In this document: in pieces, positions 1 through 61,475 of the stretch
Numbering within the stretch: the stretch's first letter is position 1
How the letters are laid out: each line of letters begins with the position of its first letter
Source: Ramazzottius varieornatus
Taxonomy: Eukaryota > Animalia > Tardigrada
DNA length: 64,000 bases
Assembly: GCA_001949185.1 (NCBI GenBank)
Contig: BDGG01000012.1
Span: 550,973 to 614,972, forward strand
Reading direction: 5' to 3'
The notes under the pieces: generated by a model
Told to the model about the DNA's origin: nothing
Seen by the model: only the letters and a program-made list of their open reading frames with translations
Database searches by the model: none
Translations under genes and position numbers: made by a program

Positions 1-3000
1 GGTGTATGCAGGTTCACGACAGACCATCACACTTGAACTACACGACCGCTCGCTTGTCTACCCGCGAGTACTTATCATGAAAGCAGGTACAGACTGTGTT
101 GAAATGCAGAGTGAAGGATCTTACGTGATTGATTCACGGATTGGCCTGTAGATGAGGGACTGGCATGGACTTGTTTCTGCAGTTCCGCCAGTTGTTCTGC
201 CAGGGTCGCCACTTTCCTCGCTTCCATCCCGGCCTTCTCTTTCTCCAAGTTTAGCTGATGTTCGAGAAGCTGCTTTTCCCTTCGCAAGTCAGAAACTTCA
301 GCCACAGAGAGTTGCCTGACTTTGTCTAGTTCCCTCTGTTGGGACGACAGCTTATCGCTAAGGTCGCGGACTTTGTGTCTTTCTGCGTCAACTTCCGATG
401 ACAACGACGATCGTTCTTCTCGAAGCGCGGAGATTCGTCCTTCCAATGCCGACATTTTGCCGGTGATGACCAACAGTTTCTCAGTGGCTGCTCGTTCTTT
501 TTCCTGCGCCAACGTCAACTGTGTCACCGCTTCCTGCAGAACAAATAAGAAAAATCGAGCATACTCTGAAAGTTCAATATAGATTTTCATGGAATTTTAC
601 CTGATGCCGCTTTGTTAAGGACAGTTCAAGTTGTTCGAAAGTACTGCTTTGTTCCGCCAGCTGCCGCTGAAGTGCCTCATTCTGTCTGAGAAGTGGCCTC
701 GTTGACTGTGACAAGCTCTGACTGAGTTCCTCGTTTCGCTTATTAGCTTCGTTAACTCTTTGTTGATAGTCTGCCAGTTCATCCCGGAACGAGTCCTCCT
801 TCCTCTTCAGCGTGCACTCCGCTCTGTTCAGGTTCGCCTGCAGTATTTCCAACCGTTCCATGAGTTCCGCTTGATCCTGTACAAGCTGCTGTTTCTGTTG
901 TTCGAGTGCGAGCCGCAGTTCCTCTTTGGCTGCCAGTTCGGTAGTGAGTAGTGTCTCGTGAACGTGGCCTTCATGAGCGGCTTTCTGGCGGTGGAGGTCG
1001 GCAAGTTCTTTGTAGGCATTGTCCAGAGCGGCTTGCATACTGCTGATCTTTGCTTTGGCTTCTTCGTGGAGGTTCCGGCTGGCTAGGAGGTCCTTCTCCA
1101 ATCGATCAACGTTAGCGCTGAGTTGCTTGATCACAATAGTGTTCTTTTGATCAAGGTCTTCGGCAAAAGCTAACGTGTTCTTTAGGGTGGCGACCTCGTT
1201 CGTCTTGCCTTCCAGTTCACCTCTGGAAGTCAGAATGAACCATGCAAAGAAAGTTCCAGAAACTTCCCGGTTTACAGCACATTCCGTAAAGTCAAGTGTC
1301 GCTGGGAGCAGGACAAAGAAACACGACAAAATTGTCTTTCTTCAGTGGCGCGCGTTCTCAGCCAATGAGATTTGCGGTAAGTCCGAGCTCCCAGTTACAA
1401 CAGAGATTGACTTACTTGAGTTTTTCCACTTCGGCTTCGAGTTCTTTCTGCTTCTGTTTGATTTTCTTGATATGGCTGGAACTTTGGAACTGCTGTTTCG
1501 ACAGTTTCTCTCCTTCTTCCATAAGTTCTTTAACTAACAGCTCTTTTTCTTGGAGTTGCCTTTGCAGATCTTTGGAAAGCGACGCGGAACTATCGCTTTT
1601 CATTCGCGATCTACATTACATGCCAAATATAATACAACACGATGCCAGTATGACCACTGCAGAATATGTTCCACTTGAAAAAAACTTACGCATTTGCATT
1701 GGCCAATTCGATCTTCGTTAGCTGAAGCTGCTCCATCAGCGACTCCTTCTCTTCAGAGGCGATGTGAAGTTTCCCTTCGAGCATCGTAATCTCGTCTCCA
1801 CGATCATTCGCGAAAGTTTCCAGCTGCGAGTGTGCCGCGGTCAGGTCCGCCACTTGACTGAAAAAAATAAGAGGCACCCTTTTGGTATCCAGAGCATCAG
1901 TCACAGCTTCACTGCAAACACCTGCATACATGATTAGCCATGAGGAACCTCTGATGCAGGTGCGCGAAAGAGTACAGATTTCACCATTTATATCGGCTAC
2001 TTTAGCAATGCAACAGTCATTGCACGAAGCACAGGTGAGTATTGATACCTTGATAGATTGTCTTTCTCTTCCTTCAGCTGAGCATTCTCGCTGCAGATAT
2101 CCACAAGCTTCCGCTCTCGAGCAGCCAGTACTTCTCTAAGGTGCTGCAATTCCTTCTTTAGCTCTTCGGGAACCGAAACAACAACCGTGGGAACATGGTG
2201 AGTTTTTGCAGAAGTTTCTTCGATAGCTGCCGCAGATGACTGATCAGAAAGTCTCTCAGTCTCTTCCAGTCCCAGCACAAGCGCTACAGGCACTTCCCCT
2301 GTTTCTTCGTGAACATGCGTCAGATGAGCAGCTTCTTCGTGGGTCTCTTCCTGGTCGAGTGCCACCGCTTCTCGTATTTCCACTTCCTCTTCTGGGGTAG
2401 TCGCTCGACGATCAATAGGTTCTTTAGGTCCAGGCTTTGATATGTCGATATTCTGGTAAGGTTGACTGCTACCTTCTATATCCACATCCTCCACTCTAAT
2501 TTTTATATCCATAATCTCGTCCTCTGTTGGTTTTTCTTCGACTGTGACGTGCTTGTATGCTGATTGGAGAGAGTCATCGGCAGCATTCCCTATGTATTCC
2601 TCTAGGGAGAGCGGAACGTCCTCCAACGCGGCCTGGACCGGAAGTGATTCGCGAGCCAGAGTGTTCCGTAAGTCAGGTTCGCTATCCTCGTCGAAGACGG
2701 CCGTCAATGATCGCCCTTGGGAAAACTCTTTGACTTCCATGATGGTTTCGCCCAGCGAATGCTCGGTGTCGAGAGGAATATCCACGAAGTTTTTGTCATC
2801 TTCATCTTGAAAAAGAATTTCCAGGCGACCTTGGGATATTTGCGAAGGCAGGGGCTGTGGACCGTCATCTGTGAAATCTTCGGACGTATAATCTGTTTTG
2901 TTCGTCGAAAAGCTAGTCTTCGCTGAAGCTTTCTCTTCGTTGTACTTGTCTGAAGGGACGGTTGGTTCATCCGGTAAAAGGGAGACGCTAGAGGCAGATG

Positions 3001-4357: not shown

Positions 4358-7300
4358 ATGGCAAGCAGGAAAGCTCCGCCGATGTTCGAGGCCAAACCTG
4401 GTGTCGCTTCGGAGTTCTTCGCGGCCGTCGAAAAAGCCCGCGACACTCGGATACGTGTTTCGATCATCAACGAGTTCTGCACAGCCTTGTTCAAACTGCC
4501 CCCTAATGTCGCGAAAGCAGAACTAGGAGACAACCGCATGTCCCCCATGGTCTTCAATCTCTTCGTCGCGTCGAGCAAATTTCACCAAACCGTCAACGAC
4601 ATCATCGGCCATGTAGTCGATACCTTCATTACTCTCGGACCAGATTGGCTTCGGAACTGCTTGGTCAGGTCTTTCGGGGAATTCTTCAACGGAGAGAGCT
4701 CACGGACGAGTGGCGGATTGAAGCTGTGTGAACGCATTTTGGACCGGAAGCAGCTCAAAGACTTACTGCTCAGTGACCGCAACTTCTCCACCATATACTC
4801 ATTCATTTCTAGCTTTCTTCCTAGCGCCATATCGAAAGATGGACTACCGTCTGCGGAAGCTGAGCTTACGTTTATGGCGAATGCTGCAGCTGCATTGAGA
4901 CTCGTCCAGAAGGTTTTAGAGGCTACTTCCGGTCCAGTCAACCGGAAGTGCCTCATGGATAGCTGCGATCGACTGAGGCAGTTTCTTCTTAGCGGCGGAG
5001 AAAAATATCCTGATCTCTACATTTCGTCCGTCGGTCTGCACGCGAAGATAAGGGAGACATTGGGACAAGAAGGTCCGACCTCAGTCCACCTGTTGAGTAT
5101 GACTGACAAAATACTCACTCAAGAAGCTCCGGTACAAAACTGTGAGAAGCTGGTTGAAGAGATACAGAACTTCAAGCTGGCTTACCCAGCTGTTACGAAC
5201 TCGCTGATGATTGCATTGTGTGAAAAGCTCACGTCAGGTTTAGCTCAAGGAAGTCACAGTCAGCAAGAGTTGGAAGAGTTCCTCACCTCATTCACAAAGT
5301 TGTGGCTGTCAGAAATGGACGACGTCCTCCAGAAAGAAAACATCTCACACCAAGAGGCAGTACTTGCCGTCAGTGTCCGTGTCTTGTCGATAATTGTAAA
5401 TAATTGGGATATTCTCACCGATGAAGACAGAGAGAGGATTCGCGTATGCGTGATGGAACTTCCAGAGGACTTTCTTTACTCGACGTACGGACAAAAAACC
5501 TGGATTTCACTTCTTCCTGTCATCGTACCCATCGAAGCCAAGAGTCTTTGGAAGACACAAGAGATTCTGGACAGATTACCGAAAAGCTACTTCGGAGTGC
5601 AGATAGTTCAGTTACTGACGTTGACGGCGACTGCGCAAGACATCGCTCGAATAGTTCAGCACTGTCCTGCCCATAGACCATTCTTGACCAAGAGCGTTCT
5701 ACCGGTGCTGATCAAACGACCCGGGCTCTTGTTTGAAGTGCTCAGGGTGTTGGGTGGAGAAGAACACTTTGAAGGATATGGGCCGCTGCTGCATGCCTTG
5801 AGGTCGACCAAAGTGGAAAACCAGGAAGCAATGCGGAGAGAAGTCTTTCAAAAGTACATCAGGGGAAACGCGGGAGTGCTGGCTGTCTTGATGGATGATG
5901 TGACGCGCTTGGAGATTTTCATCTGCTTTTGTGACGCTGCGGATCCGGTGAGCGACTTTGCAGGTATTGTGCGTTTAAGCTTACAGAATTAACCTAAGGT
6001 GTTGGTTTATGGTTATTGTTTGAGGTTTCAGAGTTCGTGGTGTTGGTCGAAAGCAACCTGGACCAGCAGTTCCTGAAATTCCGCGAGCCCTTCATGCGGG
6101 CACTGGGAAGGTTCTTCAGTCGTCTCAGCGCCAAGCTATCGTCCAAGTCGAAGTCAAAGCCTCGACCGAAAAAGGCGGCGGCAGTCGCACCTGAAGAATC
6201 TGTAGCGAAAGCTGCGGACACCGTCGCGAAGGTCCTGGAGCTTTTCCACCTGTTGATCCATCAATGCAATCCGAGTTCGTCTTACGCCAGGTAACATGAT
6301 AACCACCATATCGTTTCAAGGGATATGGAAGGCCGGCAAAGATCCGCGGGATGGTTTCTATCTCAAGTGGCGCACGGTTCCAGCCAACAACGCAGAAAAC
6401 TGCGTCATTTGAGATGACGATCGTCCCGAGATTGTTTACCGGGCTCCCATCTACGTTTCAAGTGAATTTTGGGACTTCATATTCTTTTGTGCTAGACGGA
6501 CGCTGTCTCTCCAGATCATTCAGGTCCTTCTCTCCGGACCGCTACTCACCGTTGACGCCTCAGGTCTCCAGTGGGACAGTACAGCAGTCACTCTCACTCA
6601 GCAGATATTCTGGGAAACCTTCCCGGATAACTTGACGCTGATCGTGGACATTTTCTCCATTCGGCCAGATCTTCAGACGGATCAGGTTGTGGGAGGGATG
6701 GAAATGTCCCAGCTGGCAAGCATGGCCAACAATAAAGCACGCAGCTGCGTCACGAACGACCCAAAAGTGGCGGTCAGCCTTGACATCCTACTCGACAAGC
6801 TGAAGTACACCAATGAGCAACGTCCCAACAGCAGAATGTTGGAAGCCATAGAACAACTTCGTGCAGACATATCCAACGCCAAGGTGAACAAAGTAAAAAG
6901 GGGCAAACTTTGGCGAATATTCAGATATGAATTTTTTGGGTTTTTCCAGACTTTTGGTATGCTGAGGGCGGCCCGGAATGCGCCGCTGTATGGACAGCTC
7001 TTTCGGTTACGAAGTTTGTTGACAGCAGTCGGAGTAGGGGACGAGCATGGCCAGTCTACGATAGACGCCATCATACAGGCCTGTTGGCAAACTGCCAATC
7101 TGGTGGAGAAAGCTTTGAAGGAGAACGATGCGCAGTTGAGTATGGACAAGAGTCATGTCTTGCTCGAAGAAACGGATTCGGAAGGGTTTGTAGTGTTTCG
7201 TGTCACCGCTCAGCAGCTGTTCGTGTGCTGCTGGCACTGTATGCGGGAGGTGGCCATGCTTTTTGGCGAAATTTGCTGTGGAAAAGCGACAGGTATAAAA

Positions 7301-10300
7301 AGCACGTAAGACATGAAAATTGATAGTGAGTGGCTTTCTATCCACAGTCCTGGACTACCTGTGAGATGTGGCAATTTGCTTCTTCTGCAACCGAACAGCG
7401 TTTCTGCACGAGATTGCTGGCCATGCACTGCGCAGCACGATCAGCTGATCGACGTCCGGTTGTCTTTTGACTTGCTCAAGTAATCAAGCGCGTGTCTGAT
7501 CAGCTGATCGGTCTCATGCGAATAGCATGGCGTGCACACATGAACCGTCCGGAACTGATTCCGGGCGTTTGAACTGTCACATCTCACAGGTAGGACTGTA
7601 CCTGCGTACACCAAACCTTGAGTTTATCATCGTGGTTAACATGCGGGTGAGTGAAAGATGGCTCGTTTTGTTAGCTGATATAAGCTGCAAATTGTCAAAA
7701 AATTTTGTAACAACTTCTTGCTTCTTGGTTAGCTCTTGTCTTTGATGGTACTAATTTCGTAGGGAAGTTCCTGAAAGACGCTGAGAAGGTTTGGATATTC
7801 GACTGGATGGTTTTCCAGTTGTCGGTTACTCGCCACACCGGGGCCTTCGAAGGTCTAGCGGAACAGATCGCTAGAATAGCCCAAATGTTCGACGAAGAGA
7901 AGTCCCTGAAAGGTATGGCCTTCGTCAATAAAACGTTGGACTGGGTGCTAAAGGAGCTTCGAGCGTGGAGTTCGCCGCTGTGCCCAGAGAACTCCCGGAA
8001 GAGCGCGGGGGTGCCACGACTACTGGCCATATTGTTCGTGGCACTCAGCAGAACGGACACTGGCCTCGAAGCTTTTGAACAGACAATGGTGGACTTGATG
8101 GATGTCGCCAGTGGTGATGTCAAACGGAACACAGACGACAGAGTCAGGGCGCTTGATATCCTGGAAGCACTCTTCCGAGAAAACGCCCTCAATGAGGTAA
8201 CATACCGTAAAGTATCAAATTATACAGAAAACAAAACCGAATGTTCTGTTCCTAGACCAACTGTTCATTCGTCCCCGGAATTTTGTGATGGAAAGTTTTC
8301 TAATAGTTGGGAGATGGTCTTGACGACATCGTTTTTTTCAAGTGGCGCATGCTTCCAGTAGATAACACAGGAAGCGTGCACCACTTGGGAAGCCGTCAAG
8401 GTCGTTCTTCCAAGTGGCGCACGGGTCCAGCTAATAACGCGGAATTGAGCGTCGCTTGGGGAAAAAACATTGTCGAGTTTGCTTTCCGAGCTCCCAGATA
8501 ATAATCGGGTTGAAACCAAAGTAGTGCATGACAGGAGGTTGATTTTCCTAGGTTGATTTGTGGTTTGACCTGTAGGCTGCGGAATGTTTCATCGGAGATG
8601 GCTTCATCGTGGCTTGTGACAGCGTTGCGTCCTCTGTATGGTCCGTACGCAACTCGGCGGCTGGGCTCTTCACGGCGCTGATGCAGAGGGTTTTCGGTCC
8701 ATCGGTGAGGCGACCGCCGGAAGAGCTAGAATGGAGAGAAGCCGCCTTACCTGCCCATAGATTCTTCGGCAAGTATACGGGACTGTTCGACTATATCAAA
8801 ACCTGCCTACAGAGAACGGTGGAACAAAAGGACAAGCACGTTCCTAATGACCGACAGACTTCCTCAGCGTACTGTGCTCTGCTGCTTCTACAGAGACTGT
8901 ATCCGCTGGTAGGGGATCCGCTCTACCTGACGGGGGTGACTGAAGTGCTGGAAGGGTGTCTTGCTCATCGGGACCTGCGATTACGCCAAGCAGCGGCCAA
9001 AGCCACCGTTTTGTTCCTCTCAGAAAGCGAACTGCACAATATTATAAAGAAGATCAAACCTCCCTTCCGGTAATTTTCTAGCTGGACTTGTTTATTTAGG
9101 GGGAATCTTGTAAGATGTAACTGCTTCGTTTAAGTTAGTCATTTATTTCTAGATTTTCGGGAGGCCGGTAAACGGAATGTGCAAGATCGCTGTTCCAAGT
9201 GGCACACGCTTCCAGCTAACAACGCTGTCAACGTGCGCCACTTCGGAGCTCGACAAGATCGCTTTTTCAAGTGGAGCACACCTCCAGCTAATGATAATGA
9301 GAATGTGCGCCACCTAAGATGACGATCTTGCACGTTTCGTTCGCCAACCTTCCATCTGTTTTGCCTTCAATCTACTGCTTCCGCTTTATTCATATTTCTT
9401 ATCGTATTTTGTATGTTTTTACAGCTCACTTCAGGAGGCACTGCTTGTCGCACTTGAGCTTGACCGTGTGGCACATTTCCTCTTCCAGTTCCGAAATACC
9501 CAGCACGCCTTCTACAGTAAACTGCTGGTGTACTTCGTTGACGGCTACATGGATTCTTCGTACTCTACCAAAGACCTGGCTCTTCGGATCTTCCTCAAGT
9601 TCGACCGGTGGACGGACCTTCAAGTCGAGGTGACGAACCAGAAGAAGCTGCAGGGAGCTATGGCTGACTTCTCAGAAGACGCACACGGTTGGGATCCTGG
9701 GTATACTACGTGGGCCTCAAACTACGCTGCGGCGTTGATCAAGATTTGCCAGCGCGCCATGCAGACCAAGTCGGTGGTAGGCTTGGATCAAACGGTGGGC
9801 ATGGTTGTACAGAAAATAATGTCAAAGTCCACCAGTAGCGATCTGGCAGTCCGACTTTTGAATTCACTCGATTCGAATGCCGTTTATTCCGCTGGTTTCA
9901 TCCTGCAGAATGAAGCTTTCAGAAGTTATCTTCTGGATTTATCTCCCAAACAGTCGAGTGCTTTGTTAGCAGCCAAGATAACATTACTGACTAGTGCACT
10001 GGAGTTTCATACTGGGGAGTGGCAGATGAAGAGCACTGCACGAGATACCTTCTGGCTGAACATAGTGTCGCTTCTGACTACGCTTTTAGAGTCGGAGCTG
10101 CTATGTGTCGGTCTACGGTGCCTGTCCAGGATTCGTTTGATGTTCAGAAAGCCTGAAGATGATGATCGAACAGCCCAGTTCGTGGAAGTGATTGAACGAG
10201 TGATGGAGGAAGTACCGACTTTGGAAGTGCGGATGACTTGCGCCGATGTTGTTCCTTGTCCACGAATCGAAGAGTAAGACTCGATTAAGTTTTGAATTTT

Positions 10301-12059: not shown

Positions 12060-13038
12060 ATGTCAGCTGGGAGTCAGCTAAACTGTTTTCAGGCTGCGAC
12101 ATGCGGAGTAAATACCGACTCCAACGATGACCTGGCAAACATGGAGGACCTGAAATCTACGGATGGAAGACCCGCGCTTACAGCAAACGATTACCTCACA
12201 GATGAAGAATTTGCCCTTCCTGTCATCTGCGCAAAGCTGAATTTGGATGCCGGGTTACTGCCAAAGATCTTTCCTATCCAGCTTACGGAGCGCCAGAAGC
12301 ACATCCTGGCCGTCACTTTTGCGTCACTGCGGCAAAACATTGCGGAAATCGGAGTGGTTGTCTTTATGAGGTACTGACCGGAAGTGATTGACTAATGGCT
12401 TCGTCTTTCACCCTTGCGACTACCGTAATCAGGATGCCACCCTATTTTTCCTATTCGCAGAGTCTTCGAAGCTTATCCTTACGCCCAGCAGATCTTTGAC
12501 TTGCTGAAGAATATCAGTCAAGACAACCTCGTTCACAGTCAAGCGCTTAAGTCACACGCCTTCCGTGTCGTCGGGTTCGTCGAGAAATGCATAGCTCGTC
12601 TTCATCGACCTGACAAACTGGATGCTATCTTGACCAATCTCGGCCAGAAACACCGCCAATGGAAAGTTCCACCAGGATACATTGACGTAAGAGACCATGA
12701 TACAGGAGCTCGGCAAGCAAACCAGGCAGAATTGTTTTACCCCATGGCGCACCGTTACAGCCTAAAAACTGAAGGAATGCGCCACTGGGAAAACGATCTT
12801 GTAGAGTTTTATTGTCGAAGTCTCGTATCTTGAAAATTCGAACGTGTGATAGCTAAAAGGTTGAGTTTCCGTTGTCCTCCAGTTATTAGGTCTCCAGTTC
12901 GTGGCTGCGATGAAGTCCTGTCTGGATCAGCAGTGGAACGCGGAAACGGAAGAAGCATGGATAGCGATGTTTGGTTTCATCACTTATCATATGAAAGAAG
13001 CCATGAAGATGGATGAGCAATCACCGCTTCCGCTCTAG
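12060..13038 (+). CDS. Globin X-like / neuroglobin-like globin (3 exons: ~12060-12370, 12461-12686, 12883-13038; start uncertain)
   Basis: Spliced product ...IGVVVFMRVFEAYPYAQQIF...LKSHAFRVVGFVEKCIARL...LGQKHRQW...YIDLLGLQFV...WNAETEEAWIAMFGFITYHMKEAM has distal and proximal His. Introns fall at the canonical B12.2 and G7.0 positions. Confidence 0.9.
12727..12801. repeat. 77-bp palindrome family copy (globin intron 2)
   Basis: cccatggcgcac-24nt-atgcgccactgg gaaaacgatcttg. Confidence 0.8.
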
Positions 13039-13596: not shown

Positions 13597-16500
13597 TTAG
13601 TGATGGAAGAGTCGAACTCCGGTATGCGCTAGAACCATACCGTGCTCATTCGCAGCTTCCACGACGGCCTCGTCGTGGGTCGATCCCCCGGGACTGGCGA
13701 TGAACTTAACTCCACTCTGAAACACAAAGGGGGTCAAATGAGTTTTAAGGCGTAGACCCACCTGAAAGTGCTATTTTCCAGAACACGCGTTTAAATGATA
13801 GCCGATCTCTTCTGGCCACTTTCCTTGAAAGGCAATGTACCTGGTACTTGCGCGGAACAACATGTAATCTTTTGAGAAGATGCCGAAAGTTTTTTGTTAC
13901 TCTCACTTTATGCGGCCGATGCCGGAAATGCAGTAAATTCGGAAAATGCAGTAATTTGGAAATGCAATAATTTTGGAAATTCGGGATTGATGTTTCTTTA
14001 GCGCCTCGACCAATAGCACCTAGAAGGGACTACAAGAGTGAAAGCTAATTTCTATCAAAGATGGAAACGCGTTGGAGAAAACAGAAAAGTTTTCAAAAAA
14101 CCGGCTGGTCATCCGGTGGCGAGAACCTTAATTTACCGCGTTTCAGTTGCGCACTGTAGCTTTCTAGGAATCAAAACATTTTTCTCGAGTCTTGAAAGCT
14201 GTCCGACTGGACTTCCTCCAGACTAGTTATCGGTCCGTGATAGTCTAGATGAGGCCCCCCAGATTCTCTGCACACCAAGGTCGTGGAGCACTCCAAAAGC
14301 CTTCTCCATTTACTTCAAAAATGTTTTTCAACGAATGGAATTCCAGCCTAGGCGCGAATTTTTCAGTATTGCCCATAGGTTACTCTAACTTTAGGCAAAA
14401 AGTTGCAAAGATCAAATGACCACAAAATTTCTGGCGAACGCAGCAAGAGGTCCAAATTCGTTCGCGGGGGCGCGCAAAATTGACGTCCAAATGACGTAAC
14501 CCCAGATATCCGGTTGAGGGTACGGTTTTTTCGACCTCACATATGATGCAACCCGCGAACGTTTTGAACCTATAAACGCAGCTTTAATTAAAACTTATTG
14601 AACCCCCTTATCCTCTATGCTATCGGAAAGACTATCAGAGAGACTAATCTCTGCTTCTATGTATCATTCGAACGAGATAGATCGATGTAAATGAACGGCA
14701 TCAAGAAACCAAGAAAGGCGACTTACTGCGAATGCGCGGTCGACACTATCGCGGAAGGGAAAGAACGCGTCGGAACTCAGAGCAACGTTGTCCAGTTTGG
14801 CGATCCATTGAGCTCGTTCCTCCTGTGACATGAGAGACTGGGTTAATTAGAAAGTAGTTGGAGGCTAGTCCTAGGTATCCGTGCGTACCTGAGTGAGAGG
14901 TTTGGGGACTTCTTCGAAGTAGGACTCGAACTGTTGAGTGGGCATATCTTGTCCGACCACGTCCAGGATGAAAGCGTCAATAGCATTGGCAACCTCAGCC
15001 CGCTTGACGCCCTTCTTGAACTTGAACCCAAGGATGGCTGGGTGGAGCCTTAACCACCAGCTTTCGGCTTTGGCCGCGGCGATGCGAACGCAATGGATAC
15101 GAGACTGTTGTCCAGCACCGATACCCACCACTTGACCATCTTTGGCCAAGCAGACCGAGTTGGACTGGGTGTACTTCACGGCGACGGTCGCCACCATTAT
15201 GTCCCGAAGACCCTCCTCGGTAAACTACAGAGATAACCCGTATGCGTGAAGGACTTACCGCCGATGAACGATGTTCAGACAATACTCACCTGTTTATTCT
15301 TTGAAACCAAATTGTCGAACATTTTCTTCGAGATGACGGCATCATTGCGCTTCTGCTGCAAGTTTACTCCGAAGATGGTCTTGGTTTCTATTTCGACTGG
15401 CTCGTAGTTGGGATCTATCTGCAGAGTAGAAAGAACTTAGTTGAAACTGTAATAATACAGTAGTATGAGCGCGTCTGCAAATCAGGCTCGAACTTTGAAC
15501 ATCGCAGTTCTATGAAGTGGCGGACGCTTTCAGTTAACATCGTAGCAAAAGTGCGCCACTTGAGACAACAGTCACGATGAAGCTATTTACCGACGTCCCT
15601 ATGATTCTCGAGACTCGAGTCTTTTCCTGTCACAGTTCAGCGAAGACAAATATCGATTACCTTGAGCATGCAATAGGAACCGCTCTTCTTTTTCTTCAGA
15701 AGGGCTTCAGCCTCTTTAGAGTAGCCTGGTGCGATGATGCCGTCTGAGACCTCGCGAGAGATGATGTGGGCGGTGATTTCGTCGCAAGGGTCGGACAAGG
15801 CTATGAAGTCTCCGAAGGATGACATTCGATCTGCTCCTCGAGCTCGCGCATAGGCCGTAGCTAATGGGGATAGTTGGCTGGCCAAGTCCGACACCTGGCA
15901 CAGTTCCGCTTGTTGGGCGCTGAGTGGAATACCGACCGCAGCTCCAGCTGGGCTGACATGCTTGAACGAGGTTGCGGCGGGAAGACCCAAAGCAGCCTTG
16001 AGTTCGCGCACCAACTGCCAACCGTTGAGAGCGTCGCATAGGTTGATGAAACCCGGACTGCCGTTGACGACTAGGAGAATCAATTCATCATGAAGTTCGA
16101 AAATGACCGTCAAGTGGAGGCTAGACAAATAGAACGTACAAGATCGTCATCCCAAGTGCCGCACTTCTTCATCGTTATTGGACGGAGTTGTGAGTCATTG
16201 AACATAACGATCTTGGACGTTCGCCCAGCTCTCAAGTTGTTTTAAACTATCAATTCACCAATGGGCCGCCGAAGCCGAAACTCGGCAAGAAATGATTAAT
16301 CATTGGTAGTACCTGAGAAGGGTAGCGGTCCATGGGGATGGTAGACCTCGGCGGGAGCCTGATGAGGATTGATGCCGTATCGCAGCGCCATCTGCGAAGA
16401 CCCGGCACTATAGCGCTGCCGGAAGTGCACGGCAATAGCCGCATCGTATTCTGCCGTCTGTGAAAATGCCTACAAAAAGACACCGAAACTCAATCGTCAT

Positions 16501-17835
16501 TATGGTTTTCCGAAATTTTTCCCATTCCCCTACTTGATATGTTGTGCTACTATAAATTTATCTTATCGTTCTGAAGCCTGGATCCCCGGATCGGTTACGA
16601 ACCTTTAACGCAAGCCGTTGTCGAGTCTGCTCCGATATGAGATTAGATGAGTTGTTCCGGAGTTCTTCCAGGACACTACCAAAAACAGCATTCACCGAGT
16701 CGCTAGCACACAAGGCAACCTGTCATAGCTCTCCGTTTCCTGAAATACGGTAGTACGTGCTAACCTTTGGTAATCAGTTGGATCGGAGAGGACTATGACC
16801 CGGGAATGGTTCTTCGCAGCGGCTCGGAGTAGGGTAACGCCACCGATATCGATGTTTTCGATAATTTCCGCCTCGTGTTTTGTATTCTTCACCGTCTCGA
16901 CGAACGGATACAAGTTGCAAACCACGACTGAGATCTTGTTGATTCCACGCTCATCGAGGTCCTTCATATCCTTGTCCGTATCGCGCGCAAGAATGCCGGC
17001 ATGGATCTACAATGATAACAGTTGAAGTCAAACGTTTGGTCCACCCAGCCTGACTTCTCTTCTAGAACGGTTTCTGACCAGAACTTACTATAGGATGAAG
17101 CGTCTTGACTCGTCCATCCAGCATCTCATAGGCTCCGGTGATTTCCGAGACATCAGTAACAGCCACAGCCTCATTCCTCAAGGTCTTCGCCGTGCCTCCC
17201 GATGCAATGACATGAAAACCAGCATCCACCAGACCTTTAGCCAAATTCAGAAGCCCAGTTTTGTCGTAAACGCTGATCAAGGCAAGGGACTCTGTAGATG
17301 AAGGAATACGTAGTACATTATACGGGAGGTCGGCAAACGAAGCATACGAGATCTCATTTCGAGTGGCGCACGATTTTATTATTTTTGATCAGGAGCGTGC
17401 GCCACTTATGACTTAAAAGACCAAGGGTGATGCCCCGGTTGCCTGGCGCACCCCAAAAGCCTTGCGGAATGGTTACTGTTGAACCTTTTCGTCTCAAATT
17501 TTCACGTTTGCTTTCGGAAACTTTGTCGCTTCCAGTTGAAAAAGATGTGAACTGGCTAGCAGCTTTCTGAAAATTTCGAGAGACTGTTTCGTTTTTGACC
17601 AGATTGTGTCTTGGGTCGACAGACCAATTTTTTACTCGAGAGCTGGCTGACGGAAAGCCTCATTAAAAATTGGACACAGCCAGTTAAAAATTGAGGAAGG
17701 TGATCTACCCCCCTTGTACTCCCAGAGCTCGGAATTGCGTGGTCTTTCAAGTGTTAAGGTGGTATTCTTGTACGTTTCGTTTGCTGGCATTACAGTGTCA
17801 GTGACGAATAAAACCGGCTTACCTTTGCTCTTCAT
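13597..17835 (-). CDS. ATIC: Bifunctional purine biosynthesis protein ATIC/PurH (AICAR transformylase/IMP cyclohydrolase), ~10 exons; possible upstream in-frame start at 18000
   Basis: Exons give [66 protein letters not shown] and [10 protein letters not shown]. The terminal exon 13597-13716 is [12 protein letters not shown]...HTGVRLFHH*. Confidence 0.96.
13729..14607. mobile_element. Probable TIR insertion expanding the last ATIC intron
   Basis: GGGGGTCAAATGAGTTTTAA at the left versus TTAAAACTTATTGAACCCCC at the right. Internal ~18-bp tandem GGAAATGCAGTAATT at 13924-13981. The intron is about 1 kb against about 60 bp typical. Confidence 0.5.
15500..15575. repeat. 77-bp palindrome family copy (ATIC intron)
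   Basis: gaagtggcggac-25nt-gtgcgccacttg. Confidence 0.8.
16139..16215. repeat. 77-bp palindrome family copy (ATIC intron)
   Basis: caagatcgtc atcc caagtgccgcac-25nt-gtgagtcattga acat aacgatcttg. Confidence 0.82.
17347..17408. repeat. 77-bp palindrome family copy (ATIC intron 1)
   Basis: cgagtggcgcac-25nt-gtgcgccactta. Confidence 0.8.
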
Positions 17836-18288
17836 CTTGCGGGTTCCACTGTGCAGGTTCTTCCACGGTGTGTATGATACAGGTGTGGTGTAGAAAGGGC
17901 AAATAGAATTTGAGCCGAAGGCACTGTAAGTAGAAGATCGTCGAATATTAACCGGAGAAAAGTTCAGAAGAAAGCTTGATCGAGCTTGTAGATAATGCAT
18001 GGTCAAAGTTCTCCGATTAAAACTCAGACTATGCTGAAGGTAAGACGTCGACAAGACTTTCAATGTAATCAGGTTGAAGAGGTACCTCCTCGAAGAGCAG
18101 CTTTGTCTCCATTGTCGTGGACACTATAAAAGTTGGCGATTGTTGTCAAAACTCGAAAGCAGCGGGGAAACAATCCTCTATAGTCTGATAAACATTTCGA
18201 GGTTATGTACAGTCTTTCCAGGCTCCAGCTTATTGACGATTACATTATGACTGGGAGGCCGGCAGACGAAACGTACAAGCCGTTATCT

Positions 18289-18350
18289 GTAATCGCGCAC
18301 TTTTTCATTGTAGTTGGCCGAAACCGTGCGCCACTTAAGATCACGGTAGA
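18289..18350. repeat. 77-bp palindrome family copy (between ATIC and AKH)
   Basis: gtaatcgcgcac-25nt(ttggccg)-gtgcgccactta. Confidence 0.7.
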
Positions 18351-18834
18351 TATTCTCTTCTGGCCAGTCAGATTGACCAGTGGGCAGAGTCATTTCGCCG
18401 AAGGTCTCTTGCTACCTTATTCTCGGTTGTTAATTTTCCTGAAACGAACATGCGTACGGCCAACGTTACCGGAGTTGCTGCGCTGAAGCAAGCGGCGCAA
18501 TGACGTGCGACGACAAGGACAACGGACGCGGCAGGTGTCGCACCTTCTTACTGCCAGATGAATCAACATCACGTAAGTTTCTCGTGTGAAAACAGATCAG
18601 GAAGATGGTTTGCGAGTCCTACCACAAGACGGTGGGGCCAACACGCGGAGTTGCAGAAATTATATACCTGCCTGCGTAAACCTTAAGGAACCTTCCCTTT
18701 TGTACACGAGGACCACTTGAGCATGGTGACGCGATGATGGCCAGGTGGTTCTTATTAGCCGGAAGTTAAGAGCTAAATCGGCTAATCACGCTAGGAGGTG
18801 CGCTCGTCGTTCGGCACAAGCGATCGAGTTTGAC

Positions 18835-45508: not shown

Positions 45509-48500
45509 ATGGACACCTTCACCACGCCGAACTCGGTCCGTGGGATCTCGGTGCCCTTCTATGATATGCAGAGTGTGCTGTGGAATAATATTAGCAGCAC
45601 CCCGTCCAGCGCCTACGGGCGGGGCCAATTACCGCAGGAAATGCAGTTCACCAGTGTGAATGTCATCGTGATTGTTATCTATTCTAATTTGGTTTGGATC
45701 TCCCTTCTGGGCAACATTACCGTCTTCAGCACTTTGATCAGAATGAAGAAAAAGACTCGAGTGCACATCCTTCTGCTTAACTTGTGCACTGCGGATATCA
45801 TGGTCACAGTTGTCGAGATGCCTCTAAAGGTAGGCGATTGGTCAGCGCTAGCCACCATCCAGAATGAACCCGATGACCTTTTTGCTCACTTCAGTTTGAG
45901 GTTCTCAGTCGCGGCTCGCAAGAAAAAGTACCATTTACGACTTTGTGTGAGACAGTGACAGCGAAGAACATGACTACTGGATGTCGGCAAAGGGTCTGAA
46001 CAAGATCGTTTGCCCAAGTGGCAGCTAATAACATTCCCAATGTACGCGCCACTTCGAATGACGGTCGTGTTCAATTCATTTGCCGACGGCCCAATTGTTT
46101 CGTCGTAACGCCACAGCGGTGTCAAGTCCCAGTTTCTCAGAAGCATTACTATTTCTGGAAAACACGCTCTGGCCTAACATATTCGTGCGCATGGGGGAAG
46201 TAACCGACAGGGGAAGCCGAGGCTGCAAGGGGGCTCTTTTAAGCCGGAAATTGTTCGAAATTCGAACTACAGTACATTAGTTTTGCGTAGGCCGCCAGCT
46301 GTGTTTGCCTACGATGGGATGATCCCGTAATTGGCCTGTCTGATCCTACCATACATCGGTCTGATTAGCAGGCTTTTTGTCTATCACAGTATCTGGTTCC
46401 AGCCTCCAGGCGTAGGAATTCAAATTACCCTACTTGTGGGCTTGGTGTTTTTCTCTTGGTGGTTCAAGTAAAGCTGTTACGTTGGTTTGTTTGGCAGTAA
46501 AAGGATAGAGATCCTGCCAACAAAGGACACATGCATTTCTGACTCATTGCGGACTGTAAAGAGAAATATTGAATTAAATTCGATCATACATGTTATAAAG
46601 AACGCCTGACAGGCAGCTGGGCTAATTGCTCGTGAGAACCCCATTGAACCTTTTCAAAACTCTCATGCTCGACTATGTTCCGTTTTTTTTCTCAGTATGA
46701 GCTACTTCAATAGGCGCTCGTACAAAATACAACGTTGAACATATCAAGCTGGTCGTCGGTTTTTTAAGAGGGCAATTTTATTTTTGATCTAAAGTTCCGA
46801 TACGTACGTCCTGCGCCAAACGTGAATTTCTCAGAGGTTACCTGGGTTTGTCACGGAAGGGAGATGGAGTCGAGGACAAGGAGTATTACTCTTATGATAA
46901 ACGGTTGCTAAATTGACAATCTCTCCTCTCTACATTGCTCATTTTCGTTATTCTTCAATGTCAGTCAGCATGCTCCGCATGAATTCCGATAAGTAATATT
47001 GGGAAAAGCTGTGCTCTATTCCGAGAACCTTTTGGGAAAACTTGAGAAATTCTCTGCTTGCAATTGGTCGTGAACTTGTTTTTGCTGTTACAGATTGCGT
47101 GGAAATGGACGGTGCAATGGACAGCCGGAAACTGGACATGCAAGCTGTTTTCCTGTTTACGGGTCTTCGGGCTGTACCTCAGTGCCCTCTTGCTCATTGC
47201 CATGAGTGTCGATCGGTTCTTGGCCATCTGGGACCCAATGTCTTCCGTCCAGAAAGCCGGCCAGCGAACTCGCATCATGATCCTACTCGCATGGCTCCTC
47301 GCCATTGCCTGTGCGGCTCCTCAGGTGGGTCCCCAGTCCTGTCTGGTCCGTTTCTGCATTTCCGATATAGTTCACGAGGGTCCACGAAAGTCAACAACGT
47401 CAGCGTTATATGTTTGTTCTAGGCTCTCATATTCCACGTTCTGCAACATCCAGAATACAACTGGTACCATCAGGTATGTGTATGTATGTCAGTTCTTCTA
47501 GACTTCGTTCAAGCGGATCGGATCGTCTGACTGAGTAAGACGATCGATAGTCTCACCTTGTCGGAATGTTTTAGTGCGTGACGTTTGGATCATTTGCGTC
47601 AAGGAACTCCGAAATGGCTTACGGCATAGGAGTAATGCTTCTGACGTATGGATTACCTTTGCTGACGATCCTGATGTGCTACCTGGGAATATGGCTACGG
47701 GTAGTCGCCAGTACCATTCAACACAGTTCGTACCGCTGTCCACCAATTTCGTTGGTTCTCTTATGAGCGCTACAGTGGCGCCACAGATTCACGATGGTCT
47801 TCTGTTTCTAGGGCGGTCTCCCACCGACACATACGTGACGGACTCTTTTAGGAATGGCACGGAAAGTCTACGAAGATCCATGGTTTCTTTGAGGACCAGC
47901 AATACTGACCGACTCATCAAAGCGAAACATCGCACGTTAAAGATGACTGGTAAGAACTTCCTTGTTGCATCTACACGTGGATCTTTGTGCGCGTGATTTG
48001 TTGTCCGGAATTCAACGTTCGTTGTTTTTCTTTGTAGTTTTTATTGTCGGGATATTCATCTTGTGTTGGTCGCCGTACCAGCTACTATCGATGTGGTACA
48101 TTTTTGACAGGTAATTGTCTAATGAGTACTGTAATGCTACATAAACTTCGCGAAGTGACGTCCCAGTACGCGTAGAGTTTACGGTTAAGATGACGATACA
48201 GCACACGCTTAATGTGACGTCAGTTCGCGAAGTTCGTGAAGCCTTACAGTATGTTTATCATCACCAATCAACACGTGGGAACTGGGCAAGAACATTCAAG
48301 GTCGTTATGTCGAGTGGCGCACCTTTCGAGCCAATAGCAATGAAAACGTGCGTCACTTGAGGTAAGAGTCTTGAACCTGCTGTTTGCCCAGCTCTCACTT
48401 CGCATAATTGTGTACCATACTGTATACCTAACTCATGGGTATTTTATGCAGGAACTCTGCGGCTCAACTGGATCATCTGGTCCAAGAGATCCTGTTTATT

Positions 48501-50430: not shown

Positions 50431-50518
50431 CACACATCGATTGAAGATTTTACTGACAGCTGCTCAAATCACGCTTAAAGTCATCTAGTACTTGGCGAAG
50501 CCACGTGAAACAAAGGTT

Positions 50519-53449
50519 TCAGTAGCGTCGAAAAGGAGGACTCGGTATGCTCCAGTCGGAGCTTGACGAAAGCGACCTGGTGCGGTCGCCCTTCCACGAC
50601 TCTGAATCCTTTGCGCTGCTCAGCTCTTCCCACAGTTGTTCCCCCGGCTCATTCTCCACAATATCCGTGCCGCATTTCATTTGCTGTTCCTCGAAGCTCT
50701 TGAGGATCACCTCTCTTGCAGGCCCACAATGGCCTTCGACCCCATCCTTCTTCCCTCCTCCATCCTCAGGTATCTTCTCGGCACCAGCTTTCGTCTTGTC
50801 GATGGCTTCTCGTAATTTCGCATTACTGTCTTTCATGGCACTGAACCTCGGTTCCAAAACCTTATTCAAAGCCTGTTGCTGACTGACCTGGTCTTGTAAC
50901 AACTTCAACTTGGCTTCCTGCTTCAGTAACACATTCCAGACATTCTCGTCTATCTTTCGAATCTCTTTCTGTTGCATGAAACCAATGATAATCTGCTGGA
51001 AGATGTTCTGCCTTCGACTGACATGGAAGCGTATTTCATCGTGTGCGTCTGCGACGAGCCTAATCTGTTTAGTGCCGGTGTTCTTCATGGCTTCTAGAGT
51101 TTCTTCCAGCAAGTCCAACCGTTTCGTTGGATCGCGTCTGAGCTTCATCATTTCGGGACTCTGGTACGCGAGGTACTTGAAAGCTTCTCTTACGTCCATT
51201 TCATATTCTGGTTGAGGGTGATCGTCTTCAAAGACGTACAGACTGACCTCCTCTGTGAGGTAGGTGAGGTCTTCGTGAACCATGGCCAAGTCGGCTTGCT
51301 TCTTGACCGCTTCGCGCTTTGCTCGGTCGAAGTTGCGCATGGCTTCGTTGAAGATACGAACTGCGGTGTGAAAGTCGCGGTCGACCAGGTGCTCTTCTTG
51401 GCGAACTGCTTCGAGGTTCTCGTTGATGTGCAGGTGAGTCAGTTGGCTTTCGCGCAGCAAGGCGGCTCGTTGGTCGCACAGAGCGTTGAGAGCTTCGGAC
51501 ACCATAGTTATGTGACTGGGAACCTCCTCTTCGCCCTCATCCTGCCCCTTCTTCTTTTCTCTACAACGAACGTCGTTGTTCATCGTAACAAGCTTTATAG
51601 AAAAAGAAGAGTATCGAGAAGGCGAAATGGCGCGTTCGCAAACAAATTCGACAAGGTCGTTCTTCCAAGTGGCGCACACTTCCAGTAAATAACACTGAGA
51701 ACGTGCGCCACCCGCAAAAGCAATTGTCGGCGTTGTTATTCAAGTGGCGCACTGGTCTGGTACAATTGGCTGACAGCGTGCGTCACTTATTAATCTGGTC
51801 GAGCCTGTTCGCATAGTCTCGAATACCTTTTCGGGCGAAGTTTCACAAGCTGTTTGTATCGATTCTCGGCTTCGGCTGCCTTGAGGTCGTAGTCTCTGAT
51901 CTGAAAGTACCCATCCTGCATTTTCCGCTTCAGATCGTCCAGTACATCTTCCACCTTGTCGTTCTCTTCGTCCAGGGACTTTAACTCGACGCGGTAGCCC
52001 TCGGTCTGCTTGGCCATGTACTGCAGCATCTCGTCGCCCGCTTCCAAGTCCCACAACCTCAAGAACTCGTCATCGAAGTTATCAATGTCAACATATTCCA
52101 GCTTGAGGTTGTCCCATATCGCCACGTTCTTGGCATGCAAGACTTCGCTGGTCTCATCTTGTCTCTCTATCCTAGCGTGGTCAGTCCGCGTGGTCTTCAG
52201 GTCGCGGTAGTTGATGAGCATAGGGTCGACACCGAGAAGGGACAGGAAATCAGTGACGCCAGCCTCGTCATCGTCGTCTTCGTCGCTGGAAGACTCTTCG
52301 GGCTCTGGTTCGGCTTTCGGCTGTTGAAGAGGAACCACAGGGACCGGTGTGGATTCATGTTCAGGCTCAAGGTCTTGCCCCGTTTCGTCGACAGGCGTCG
52401 GTTCAGGTACGGAATCGGGTTCGCTACGTGATGAAGGGACTGGAAGGGCAGGTATCACGAACTTGCTCTATAGCCACAGTCAAAACTGATTTGGAGTTTT
52501 TCTTCCACTGATGGGAAAAGTTTGAATAATCTCAGTTCTTAGAAGGGTCGATAGTCCGTTTAAGAAGAAATATTCGCGAAGGTACGAAATGGAATACTGT
52601 TGTTTGCAACATTACTGTCTAGCTTGACCAACCTGTTTGCTTTGTCGACCGAAAAAGGTAGATACTCGTTGGGAAAAGCTTCGTTTCGGTTGGGAAGGTG
52701 GCATTGATACTGTTGGCTTGGGTGCCGGGGGACTTGGTACTTGAATGACAGGAACATTTGCGATCGGAGAGATCTTCGCCACCAGCTCATTCGCTTTCTT
52801 CTCCGCATCTGCAACCGCTTTTTTCGGGTCTGTCGAAGTCCTGCTTTCTCCACCTCCGCCTATGAAAACCAACAAAAACAAAATCGTGTTTCACATCTAA
52901 TACGTTGATCTCTGCCTCTTCTTCAGTGGCATAACGCTATCGAACAGACCTTGTGGTGGTGGTACTATTGAAAGAGACGCGGCGGGAGTGGTAGGCGGAA
53001 GTATTGGTCCAACAGCTGGCTGCGCCTCTGGAAAATCCGAGTTCCAGGGTTAGCAGGACACTACAACAGAGGTCGTAGGGACCAAGGCCGATAAGTCAGA
53101 ACATCATCAAGGTGTAGCAATAACAAACCTGGCAAACTGCCCCTTGCCAAGCTTATCTCTTCGCTCCTTCTTCTCAGCCGATCAACCTTCGATTGCCGTC
53201 GGAACCGCTTGCCACTTCCTTCTTCTTGCTCTGCAGGATAAAGACCTCTCAAGTTGGGTTTACAATAGCACATTTCGCTGAGATCATACCAGAATAGGGT
53301 GGTACGGGTTTGGTTTGCATGGTTCCACTAGGGCTTGTAATGGCCAGCTGTCCATATCGCACAGCTTTGTCGTCTGCCACTGAACTTCCGAGTGCAGATT
53401 TTCTTCCCGTCCCGGACACTTTCCGGCTGGGCCGCTGTTTTGGCGCCAT
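50519..53449 (-). CDS. Orphan multi-exon protein with a Pro-rich/acidic N-terminus and a long coiled-coil C-terminus
   Basis: ORFs 53249-53449, 53061-53273, 52612-52881, 51790-52458 and 50519-51679 join in frame through GT-AG introns, for example PK-AG|gtattc...ttgtag|A-GAA giving PKREKKKG. Confidence 0.65.
51652..51789. repeat. 77-bp palindrome family doublet (coiled-coil gene intron)
   Basis: Cores start at 51666 and 51741, with spacers in opposite orientation. Confidence 0.85.
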
Positions 53450-59000: not shown

Positions 59001-61475
59001 CTTTCCCGCAAGAATGAAGATGAGATCCAAGAAAGATAAGGTAATGACGGTGGAGAGCGTCAGCAAGCCGGTGGAAGACGATACTGCAGTCAGCAAGGAG
59101 GAGGAAGCCAGCAGAGCCTTCCCGCCACCGCCCATGGTCCGCTCCAACTCGGTGAAGCCGGTTCCGAAGCGGGTTGAACTAAAAGGTACTTTCATAGTCT
59201 CTTTTCTAACTTTGCGAGGGGATGCTGAGTACATGTATCTCGGCTTAATTTGCAGATCTGCCGAAGAACATCAAGAGACTGTTGAGGAACCGAGCATACC
59301 TCATCAAGCTCTGCGCTCAACTACTCGGTTCTTTCGTTCTGGCCGGTAAGTCGCGAACTTGTATATACCTCACCTGATTTTCAAACTTGGTTAGATTGTA
59401 TACTGACGGCAAGGCTTGATGTTTCAGGTTACATGTCGTTTGCTCAGAAGTTTCTGAAGGAACAGTACCAACTACCGCAGTCTGTTACGAATACGGCTGG
59501 AGGTAAGGATGAACATGTTCACGTCTTTCTTCCTCTACTTAAATCCCTCGTTGCTTCTAGGGATACCGCCCATCTTTCTGGGTTTTCTCGGCATCTTGCT
59601 GGGAAGTTTTCTAATTCGCCGATTCAAGTTCAGTCCAAAACAAGTTTGCTACATGATGGCGGCTTCCTCTCTGATTGGATCAATCTGCTACTTCAGCGTC
59701 ATCGGTATGGGCTGCGAAAAGGAAGACGTCCTCGGCATCGACGATGTCGCGAACCCATACAACACGTAGTTTATTTCGTTCCTCATCTTGAGACGTAGCT
59801 CCTTCTACTATACTTCGTGAAAGCGATTAAGGGAAATGTTTGACGGTATGTGTAGAACCGGAGACCAAACGTGCCACGTCCAGCGAGACTGCAACTGCGT
59901 CGACTTTTCCTTCGCACCCATATGCAACACTGTTACCAAGAAGAGTTACCTGTCCGCTTGCTACGCTGGCTGTAAAACTGCTAGACGAAATCCTCACGTA
60001 AGTACTGTATTACCTCTAAGGTTTCGCGCAGTCACGTGACAAGCCAGTAGATATTGCGTGGCGGGGATAAAAAACTTCGCTGCCATCAATAAAAAATTCT
60101 TGCCCAATCAAGCCCAGCAATGTGGCACAATCAAGCAATCAGTGACATGAGGCCCCGGGTGTAATCCACTGATCTGTCACGTGACTGCGCGAAACGTTAG
60201 AGGTAATACAGTAACCTGCTTGATTATTGGATCGTGCGATACACCAGTCTGACTTATCTTGACTTCGTTTCTCATTATTTGAATACAGGCGAGGGAGAAA
60301 GAGTATATGGGCTGTTCTTGTGCATGGAACGGATTCTCCAGGAACTCCAGCCATTTTATGGCAAACCACACAAACTTGGCCCACAGTCATCTGAACGATA
60401 CTCGTCCACCAAGAGTAGTATCAGGCTTGTGTAAGAAGGACTGTCTGGGCTCCTTCATCAAGTACGTCGTGGCCATCTCCATAGCCAAGTTCTGTATGGG
60501 CTTTCCGCTCTCCGGCATTCTGATGCTGCAGTTCAGGTACGGCTACATCCATACTCAATTCAGTTTTCATACCTAAAACAGATCTTTAGCTTTTTTATGT
60601 TACCAGGATTGTCGATGTCGACCTGAAGAGCTTGGCCAATGCCGTCACCACCGTTGTTACATCGACGCTCGGTTTGCTACCGGCACCGATACTTGTGGGC
60701 AAGCTGATCGACTCTACATGCCGGCTTTGGGCGCAGAACCCTTGTGGCACTCAGGGTGCTTGCTGGCTGTATAACGCCGACAACTTCCGGTGGAAGTACG
60801 ACCGTCTTAGCTCTCGTTTCTTTGGACGGAAGTCACATTGGTTTTCGTTTTACGCAGATTGCACGCCTCCGTTGGAGTTGTCCGGATTGTCACGATGATC
60901 CTGGAATTACTTGTAAGCATCGATTTCGTGTTTGCAGTGGCTCTGATCAAAATTTATTTCCTGATTCAATCTGTGGCTTCTTTTCCAGCTGGCCTATCAA
61001 GTCCGCAATATCACCTTCGACCGAGAAGGTGACGCTAAAAGAGCGGCTGGCGGGCCTCCCCAAAGCGAAAGTTCCGCCAGCGTGTCGGTCGCCACGTCTA
61101 GTATCAGCCTTACAATGGCTGATAACTCGTCGGATTCGGGGATATCGGACGAACAGGAACAAGATCAGGAACAAGACCCAGCTACAGCCATACATGATGC
61201 GCACCAAAAGGTAGGCGTATGTGTATGGGCCGTCAGACGAATTGAGTCACCAAAGTCATTTCCGCAAGTGGCGCATAGTCCCAGCCAAAAAAATGAGACC
61301 GTGCACCACTCCAGACAACAATGTGGGTGGAATCATTCGCCGACGTCTCAAACTCCCAACTATGGGAAAAAAGTCCCAGAGAAACCGCCACCTATCGTGA
61401 AGTGAAGCTATCTCACAACTTTTGTTCGTGTTTCAGAGCATGCTGGTCTCACCATCTGGAGAGATGCCGACATAG
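56083..61475 (+). CDS. SLCO: Organic anion transporting polypeptide (OATP/SLCO), multi-exon, copy 1
   Basis: N-terminal CNILGWKPHWLQ, PSIEKRFGFTS, PFVDDNVKTKNSPLY, DPRWISAWYMGF, Kazal-like CQRDCNC...FAPICN...YLSACYAGC and GKLIDSTCRLW...CGTQGACWLY. Confidence 0.93.
60005..60211. mobile_element. 207-bp TA-flanked MITE with 37-bp TIRs in an SLCO intron
   Basis: TA|CTGTATTACCTCTAAGGTTTCGCGCAGTCACGTGACA...TGTCACGTGACTGCGCGAAACGTTAGAGGTAATACAG|TA, one mismatch between the TIRs. Confidence 0.88.
61251..61325. repeat. 77-bp palindrome family copy (last SLCO intron)
   Basis: caagtggcgcat-24nt(ccagccaa)-gtgcaccactcc. Confidence 0.8.

Follow-up and report, generated by a model that had tools for sequence, protein, structure and literature searches.

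The repeats dispersed through a 64,000-nucleotide stretch of the genome of the tardigrade Ramazzottius varieornatus (contig BDGG01000012.1, positions 550,973 to 614,972; this whole stretch is referred to as the window) very probably derive from a single old DNA transposon of the non-autonomous kind, a miniature inverted-repeat transposable element (MITE) that is now inactive and whose copies have decayed. The family is a palindrome of about 123 bp. It is ordinary save for a slow-decaying motif in each arm (to be referred to as the box, CAAGTGGCGCAC). In the searchable literature, no paper was found on tardigrade MITEs, introners or the box motif.

With at most one mismatch allowed, the box occurs 25 times in the window, compared to a mean of 0.19 and a maximum of 2 in shuffled sequences. 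A profile hidden Markov model (HMM), seeded with 8 window copies and then iterated, finds 23 units at 18 loci. All 23 cores listed in a preliminary description of the window are among them, the copy at 1343 being a weak partial match. The sequences at 16139-16215 and 48297-48373 also agree with the unit of 77 bp given in that description. The actual element is longer, however. When the copies are printed with wider flanks, a third inverted arm pair, GGGACGTCGGCAAA / TTTGCCGACGTCCC, is found about 23 bp beyond the 77-bp ends.

The consensus element of about 123 bp contains three arm modules, the outer terminus (GGGACGTCGGCAAA and about 10 nt), the middle arm (AAGATCGTT) and the box. The centre has 25 nt and includes CAGCCAATAAC, and the mirror-image arm then completes the element. 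The arms form terminal inverted repeats (TIRs) with the termini GGGACGTCGGCAAA / TTTGCCGACGTCCC, and 56 of the 61 consensus arm positions are complementary. The consensus has a folding energy of -85.5 kcal/mol, and folding as one hairpin persists in 29 present-day full copies, with a mean z of -3.5. Doublets, in which two cores share a single outer-arm pair, are found at 6 of 51 loci, and 5 of these are in the window.

A 4-bp target-site duplication (TSD) is located at the true ends of the element. For the bases outside GGG.../...CCC at 24 loci, only the 4-bp register beats shuffled pairings (51 matches compared to 41.8 expected). Perfect 4-bp duplications are present at 4 of these loci, compared to 0.74 expected (p=0.004), and at 7 loci, compared to 1.45 expected, in a set of 39 with clear termini that are recognisable without indels. 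In the larger set, the two middle positions of the duplication match at frequencies of 0.54 and 0.49, compared to 0.29 and 0.33 in the shuffles. The flanks have the pattern A-W-W-T on both sides. Of the 24 right flanks, 22 start with A and 17 have T as the fourth base, while A and T predominate at the two bases between; ATTT, ACTT, AACT, ACAT and ATAT are examples of the duplication. One locus has AGTC on both sides, which favours a 4-bp over a 2-bp duplication. The preliminary description reported no consistent TSD because its ends were set about 23 bp too far in.

The AWWT duplication of 4 bp has been called a hallmark of Sola1 transposons in a study of insect Sola1 MITEs (PMC3845634), and the TSDs of Sola2 are also AT-rich, 4 bp long and of the AWWT type (PMC3627910). 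By this signature, the tardigrade family would be a Sola-like palindromic MITE. The Sola1_NA repeat of Bombyx mori gives a score of 26 against the middle arm and box, compared to 19.4 ± 3.2 for shuffles. This resemblance of the terminal repeats is weak (p=0.036) and is a lead, not proof. The piggyBac and Kolobok superfamilies were rejected as the flanks are AWWT and not TTAA. A PIF/Harbinger (Tourist-like) assignment, with a 3-bp TWA duplication, was also rejected, as the 3-bp register is without signal (identity 0.31) and lies under the 4-bp register.

The 55.8-Mb genome (55,842,812 bases in 200 contigs) contains 5,283 exact boxes, compared to 6 for the reversed pattern. The family is therefore not confined to the window, and the thousands of copies anticipated in the preliminary description are present. 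Perfect box pairs number 452 with a spacer of 20-30 nt (0 in the control), 5 with a spacer of 31-60 nt and 8 with a spacer of 1-19 nt. A copy-number model, in which both boxes of a unit are assumed to decay independently (2Nq=5,283 and Nq^2=465), is solved by q=0.176 and a copy number N close to 15,000 units. This corresponds to 13.5% divergence per box site, in agreement with the sample values of 13% for the divergence and 0.18-0.20 for the fraction of perfect boxes. The density of 57 units per 264 kb gives an estimate of about 12,000 units genome-wide. About 3% of the genome thus consists of this family. With its small size (about 123 bp), its lack of coding sequence, its dispersal over many contigs in about 15,000 units, its TIRs and its 4-bp duplication, the repeat is the ultra-short, MITE-like mobile element that was among the original suggestions.

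The closest non-self relatives of four tested copies in the entire genome have 77-81% identity over about 100 bp or more. As none of the four has a relative above about 81%, no young copies were found and the family appears to be old. On these sequence distances, it is probably both old and extinct or inactive. The copies are also clustered. The 3-kb flanks of 30 fetched copies contain 29 further units, about 1 further unit per 3 kb near a copy, compared to 1 per 4.6 kb in the unselected 264 kb. They probably cluster in intron-rich genes.

About half or more of the copies are housed in short introns. At 26 of 51 loci, open frames of at least 70 codons on the same strand are located within 90 bp on both sides of the element. 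In comparison, random placements satisfy this flanking arrangement at 11.2 ± 2.8 loci, and at no more than 19 in any of 200 trials. One locus interrupts an Amino_oxidase domain, separating profile positions 218-320 from positions 331-377. The exons of this gene, the amine oxidase gene RvY_01414 (C1:4082568-4084989), were rebuilt from the public protein GAU88779.1 for the first 411 of 507 residues, which covers the first five introns. The five GT-AG introns have lengths of 247, 70, 95, 185 and 177 bp. One copy each is located in the 247-, 185- and 177-bp introns, and the elements are 117, 119 and 123 bp long. This leaves non-element remainders of 130, 66 and 54 bp, compared to 70 and 95 bp for the two element-free introns. 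The element accounts for about 50-70% of the host intron length, with the splice sites in host sequence outside it. Insertion has roughly tripled the length of the short introns that host the element.

A Logan contig of 1,527 bp encodes a 181-aa product with 95% identity to an exon of RvY_01414. The product continues into the intron, with VSFQSLGP in place of VSFQSLRP in the R. varieornatus genome. Since it reads through into the intron, it represents unspliced genomic DNA from a close relative or another strain.

There is one striking feature in the decay of the family, the slow divergence of the boxes. Retrieval of copies by their boxes would trivially inflate box conservation, and the HMM was therefore rebuilt with the 24 box columns masked. 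Among its 54 hits (30 of them outside the training set), box divergence is 11-13%, compared to 31% elsewhere. For 29 bystander units, fetched merely as neighbours of other copies, the values are 13.1% and 33.1%. The best-kept core, AGTGGCGCA, is 84-100% kept in both arms, and a second conserved block, GGCAAA/TTTGCC, is 80-88% kept. Box decay is unlinked to the overall decay of a copy (per-unit rho 0.08), and divergence outside the box is 26-33% in units whose boxes are perfect, so that age does not account for the difference. Nearly all boxes with at most one mismatch (56 of 59) fall within called units, which argues that no host motif pre-dated the element.

Several simple causes of this conservation were rejected. 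Base composition was ruled out by a test. Misalignment was dismissed as the loop, which has a fixed length, is 30% diverged, and GC-biased conversion between the arms as the A/T and G/C positions of the box are conserved equally. Protection from mutation in the hairpin is not indicated either, the middle and outer stems being as diverged as the loop. A site for an NK2 homeodomain was also considered, as TCAAGTGG ranks first among octamers for Nkx2.2 (PMC3050729). Conservation is highest in AGTGGCGCA, however, and the 5' T/C-C-A positions are just 37-81% kept. A promoter or CCAAT-box element was rejected as well; the copies are intronic, and their centre is conserved no better than the arms.

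A number of observations weigh against this account of the family and its boxes. The TSD is heavily decayed, and the sequence pattern would be identical if the duplication were of 2 bp and each end of the element one base longer. No autonomous partner or transposase was found in the 357 kb examined, in which no Sola reference protein was used. As a result, the Sola assignment is based on the duplication signature, together with the weak repeat resemblance. An arm-only HMM within the same 357 kb also gave no longer elements with the same termini, for which the preliminary description had suggested looking, but merely neighbouring copies 1-8 kb apart. A second allele reaches 25% or more in 29 columns of the alignment, which represents real subfamily structure, and of the changes that affect both arms, 34 of 48 in the middle arm and 71 of 126 in the outer arm are complementary. 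Pairwise distances average 0.45, compared to 0.50 under a star phylogeny. Some of the divergence outside the boxes is thus older than the insertions. A clock based on the decay of the duplications gives d=0.51 under a homogeneous model (confidence interval 0.39-0.67), which excludes neutral decay of 13%. A mixture model with d=0.13, however, gives an equally good fit.

The difference between box and non-box positions is smaller, but still present, when the subfamilies are discounted. One-sided arm changes amount to 12% in the box and 23-25% outside it, and third plus fourth alleles to 4.6% and 11.4%. The partners of direct doublets have 15% divergence in the box and 35% elsewhere, and the 31 nearest relatives of one copy, compared to their own consensus, have 10% and 21.5%. 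From these sequence comparisons, the protection of the box after subfamily correction is about 2-fold, with a range of 1.5-2.7.

A possible origin of the family can be outlined from these data. The transposon inserted at AWWT targets, with duplication of 4 bp. Its copies would have landed in pre-existing introns of 50-130 bp, and may have been tolerated there because the palindrome is able to pair with itself within the pre-mRNA. In the long inverted repeats, the box and the GGCAAA block would serve as modules for protein binding, presumably bound by the transposase originally.

The evidence on the boxes leans toward a constraint after insertion that would act on double-stranded DNA, as a protein-binding site. 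In host-level exaptation, purifying selection would keep about 30,000 paired putative sites, 24-25 nt apart, for a host protein such as a domesticated DNA-binding domain of a transposase or a chromatin factor. The chances of this reading are a little short of even. The roughly 2-fold slower decay of the box is found under every control applied, it is independent of overall decay, with binomial mismatch counts, and it is strand-symmetric. The strong excess of complementary double changes indicates that the copies were born as good palindromes, in which case the breaks would post-date insertion; at present, 43% of pairs are broken in the middle and outer arms, compared to 22% in the box. Moreover, there are 0.78 indels per 100 bp in the box-loop-box segment and 1.66 in the arms, 452 of 465 perfect pairs have the 20-30-nt spacer, and the homogeneous duplication clock places neutral decay at 0.39 per site or more. 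On the other hand, that clock is not decisive, no binding protein is known, and the boxes are nearly absent outside the element, so that they do not derive from a pre-existing host motif. The GGCAAA block and the box resemble the two modules of a transposon arm, which recognition by a transposase would explain equally well, and the box is conserved equally in intron-like and other loci, so that no dependence on context is visible. For the genome, it is rather doubtful that some 30,000 boxes with the AGTGGCGCA core, two per unit, are kept by selection as putative host-protein sites. A candidate for such a host protein is perhaps a domesticated Sola transposase. The domesticated protein-binding system proposed in the preliminary description is a candidate reading; the slow decay of the box is consistent with it, and selection at the host level is one of the two readings that remain. 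In the other, the boxes would have no host function. They would be transposase sites that were kept by selection for mobility, with transposition continuing only in copies whose boxes were intact. New copies would have started out with good boxes but with spacers that had diverged beforehand, and all sites would have decayed alike by about 13% since extinction. This is a tentative possibility, well under an even chance. The subfamily structure and the symmetric variants in both arms show that some of the variation predates insertion, and the divergence is reduced from 0.295 to 0.215 relative to a kin-group consensus, which denser sampling might lower further. The conserved blocks are likely binding modules, the box resembles AAAGTGGTGTA in the repeats of insect Sola1 MITEs, and no model describes the duplications better than the mixture model in which decay is 13%. 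Mobility selection requires about 25% mismatched arm pairs at birth, however, yet the changes in both arms are mostly complementary. It also requires a long active period, whereas the binomial box counts and the lack of a correlation between box and non-box decay indicate no spread in age. In addition, the extreme termini (GGG...CCC), where the transposase cuts, are just 66-77% conserved.

The remaining explanations have much lower probabilities. A function at the RNA level, with the hairpin and chiefly its G+C-rich box stem selected in pre-mRNA (for splice-site pairing or small RNAs), is improbable. Most copies are intronic and still fold as one long hairpin, and the remainders of element-bearing introns (54-130 bp) match the element-free introns of 70 and 95 bp. 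However, the copies show no preferred orientation (18 point in the direction of the gene and 13 against it), G.U pairs number 127 in the sense and 102 in the antisense direction (p=0.11; 24 and 19 in the boxes), and decay in one box of a unit is independent of that in the other (rho -0.12), with compensatory double changes in just 5 of 14 cases. Box conservation is unchanged outside intron-like loci, and a scan of the entire window with Rfam 15 gave 0 matches at the gathering score. The RNA-hairpin system of the preliminary description is therefore disfavoured by the absence of orientation bias, sense-strand G.U bias and coupling between boxes. It is still less probable that each insertion created its own intron, as with introner-like elements, even though the element fills most of many short introns and the remainder is merely about 34-38 bp at a few loci. 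In the three protein-verified introns of RvY_01414, GT and AG are located 25-82 bp outside the copies, in unconserved T-rich sequence. The sequence beyond the duplication is not conserved among the copies, and the Amino_oxidase domain runs across the intron without loss. The distant splice sites, the unconserved flanks and the normal size of the remainders together indicate that the copies landed in existing short introns. Finally, a eukaryotic counterpart of the bacterial repetitive extragenic palindromic (REP) sequences and bacterial interspersed mosaic elements (BIMEs), moved by a RAYT-like HUH enzyme through single-stranded hairpins, deserves hardly any credence. The palindromic units, the doublets, the clusters and the high density are in line with it, but the element has TIRs and a TSD, and its copies are in spliceosomal introns and not at operon ends, which runs counter to the REP analogy drawn in the preliminary description. 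Moreover, no member of the family was found in prokaryotic genome or metagenome collections. The perfect box pair has 0 hits there, and a looser palindrome finds 120 contigs with one weak profile match (E=1.5e-4, in the box region only), which indicates that these contigs are chance matches.

The copies in the window, as decayed members of this MITE family, are the following.

1302..1366, + strand: weak partial unit (the copy at 1343), nhmmer score 27.
1845..1856, - strand: lone box with 1 mismatch, outside the HMM-called units; probably a remnant.
6313..6464, + strand: full unit (element proper 6327-6448), flanks ATAT/ATCT, same-strand open frames on either side.
8307..8511, + strand: direct doublet, cores at 8339 and 8411 within one outer-arm pair, flanked by + strand frames 7711-8358 and 8576-9070.
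9143..9369, + strand: direct doublet, cores at 9196 and 9268, flanked by + strand frames 8576-9070 and 9318-10274.
12693..12841, + strand: full unit (12704-12824).
15507..15599, + strand: unit without a recognisable left outer arm.
16100..16246, - strand: full unit (16116-16233), perfect flanks ACTT/ACTT, - strand frames on either side.
17314..17408, - strand: unit truncated on one side.
18240..18368, - strand: decayed but full unit.
21900..22100, + strand: direct doublet, cores at 21941 and 22003, element 21905-22087 with a perfect ATTT/ATTT duplication.
25640..25707, - strand: partial unit, flanked by - strand frames 25053-25568 and 25770-26180.
26641..26786, - strand: full unit.
38330..38476, - strand: top-scoring unit (38345-38466), with GTATGT 11 bp upstream and TTTTTCAG ending 27 bp downstream; DUF4807 is in the downstream exon.
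40877..41083, - strand: direct doublet, cores at 40909 and 40992, with a BTB/POZ exon upstream of the doublet.
45974..46101, + strand: unit with a shortened centre, after frame 45329-45955.
48265..48411, + strand: full unit (48277-48396), flanks ACGT/ACTT.
51624..51812, no strand assigned: doublet, cores at 51666 and 51741 in opposite centre orientation, flanked by - strand frames 50522-51739 and 51793-52467.
61219..61360, + strand: full unit (61228-61349), after frame 60708-61211.

Both flanks of the copy at 6327-6448 (within window positions 6290-6500) contain CGTTTCAAG, which is similar to the junction of the middle arm and the box. By this similarity, the copy may be nested inside an older, degenerate copy. 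Elsewhere in the genome, an array of at least three cores is located at C1:1477-1652, with three exact boxes on the same strand and a period of 82 bp.

Several of the window copies are next to open frames or exons. Successive long frames on the same strand (546, 298, 216, 165, 319 and 260 codons) are located at 4352-11075 (+). They have no Pfam match in the pieces scanned, and the region looks like a single large lineage-specific gene with five cores in its introns. The 406-codon frame at 50522-51739 (-) also has no Pfam match, and its 406-aa product has no homologue in a search of 5.8 billion proteins within the length range covered. The BTB/POZ exon at 39998-40630 (+) and the DUF4807 exon at 38513-39034 (+) each adjoin an element-bearing intron. 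This is also the case for the exon at 45329-45955 (+), which has a weak match, below the cut-off, to the start of a rhodopsin-type receptor.

One family thus occupies about 3% of a genome that is among the smallest in animals. Many of the short introns have become roughly three times as long through it, which bears on the intron-length distribution of R. varieornatus. The family is also relevant to the annotation and masking of this genome and to motif analyses of any kind in a species that serves as a model of extreme stress tolerance. The motif with 2-fold protection is the one unusual feature of an otherwise ordinary MITE. With about 15,000 independent copies in which 9-12 bp decay at about half of the neutral rate, it would be an unusually clean natural experiment on takeover by the host. 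If the boxes are bound by a host protein, this compact genome would carry a lattice of chromatin- or insulator-type sites that is derived from a transposon and resident in introns.

Among the known systems closest to the tardigrade family are Sola elements. The Sola1_NA MITEs of insects (Bombyx mori, Rhodnius prolixus and Heliconius; PMC3845634) are also non-autonomous, with a 4-bp AWWT/AWDT duplication and long terminal repeats that start with GGAC.G. Their interior contains AAGTGG(Y)G(Y)A, separated by a similar distance from a ..CGTT motif, in weak resemblance to the tardigrade repeats. On the other hand, they are 194-709 bp long, with repeats of 28-36 bp and tens to hundreds of copies, whereas the tardigrade element is a full palindrome of 123 bp whose units number about 15,000. 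In Dictyostelium and Polysphondylium, Sola2 elements (PMC3627910) have the AWWT duplications ATAT, AAAT and ATTT, as in the tardigrade family. In comparison, these amoebozoan elements are autonomous or chimeric, several kb in length, with 12-21-bp repeats. The bacterial REP sequences and BIMEs are similar as short dispersed palindromes that are sometimes in arrays. They differ in that they are without terminal repeats and a duplication, are moved by RAYT and are located between bacterial genes.

For the spread of a binding motif by a mobile element, there is a precedent in the short interspersed element (SINE) B2 of rodents, which carried one CTCF motif to thousands of sites that are partly retained. 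Binding is demonstrated there, while the tardigrade boxes show a roughly 2-fold slower decay. The Tc1-like elements with inverted repeats/direct repeats (IR/DR), of the Sleeping Beauty type, have long inverted repeats with two related binding modules in each arm. They have TA duplications and repeats of about 200 bp, unlike the tardigrade element. By analogy with this arrangement, GGCAAATG and TCAAGTGG, the two best-kept blocks of the tardigrade arm, may correspond to two such modules, a likeness in architecture only.

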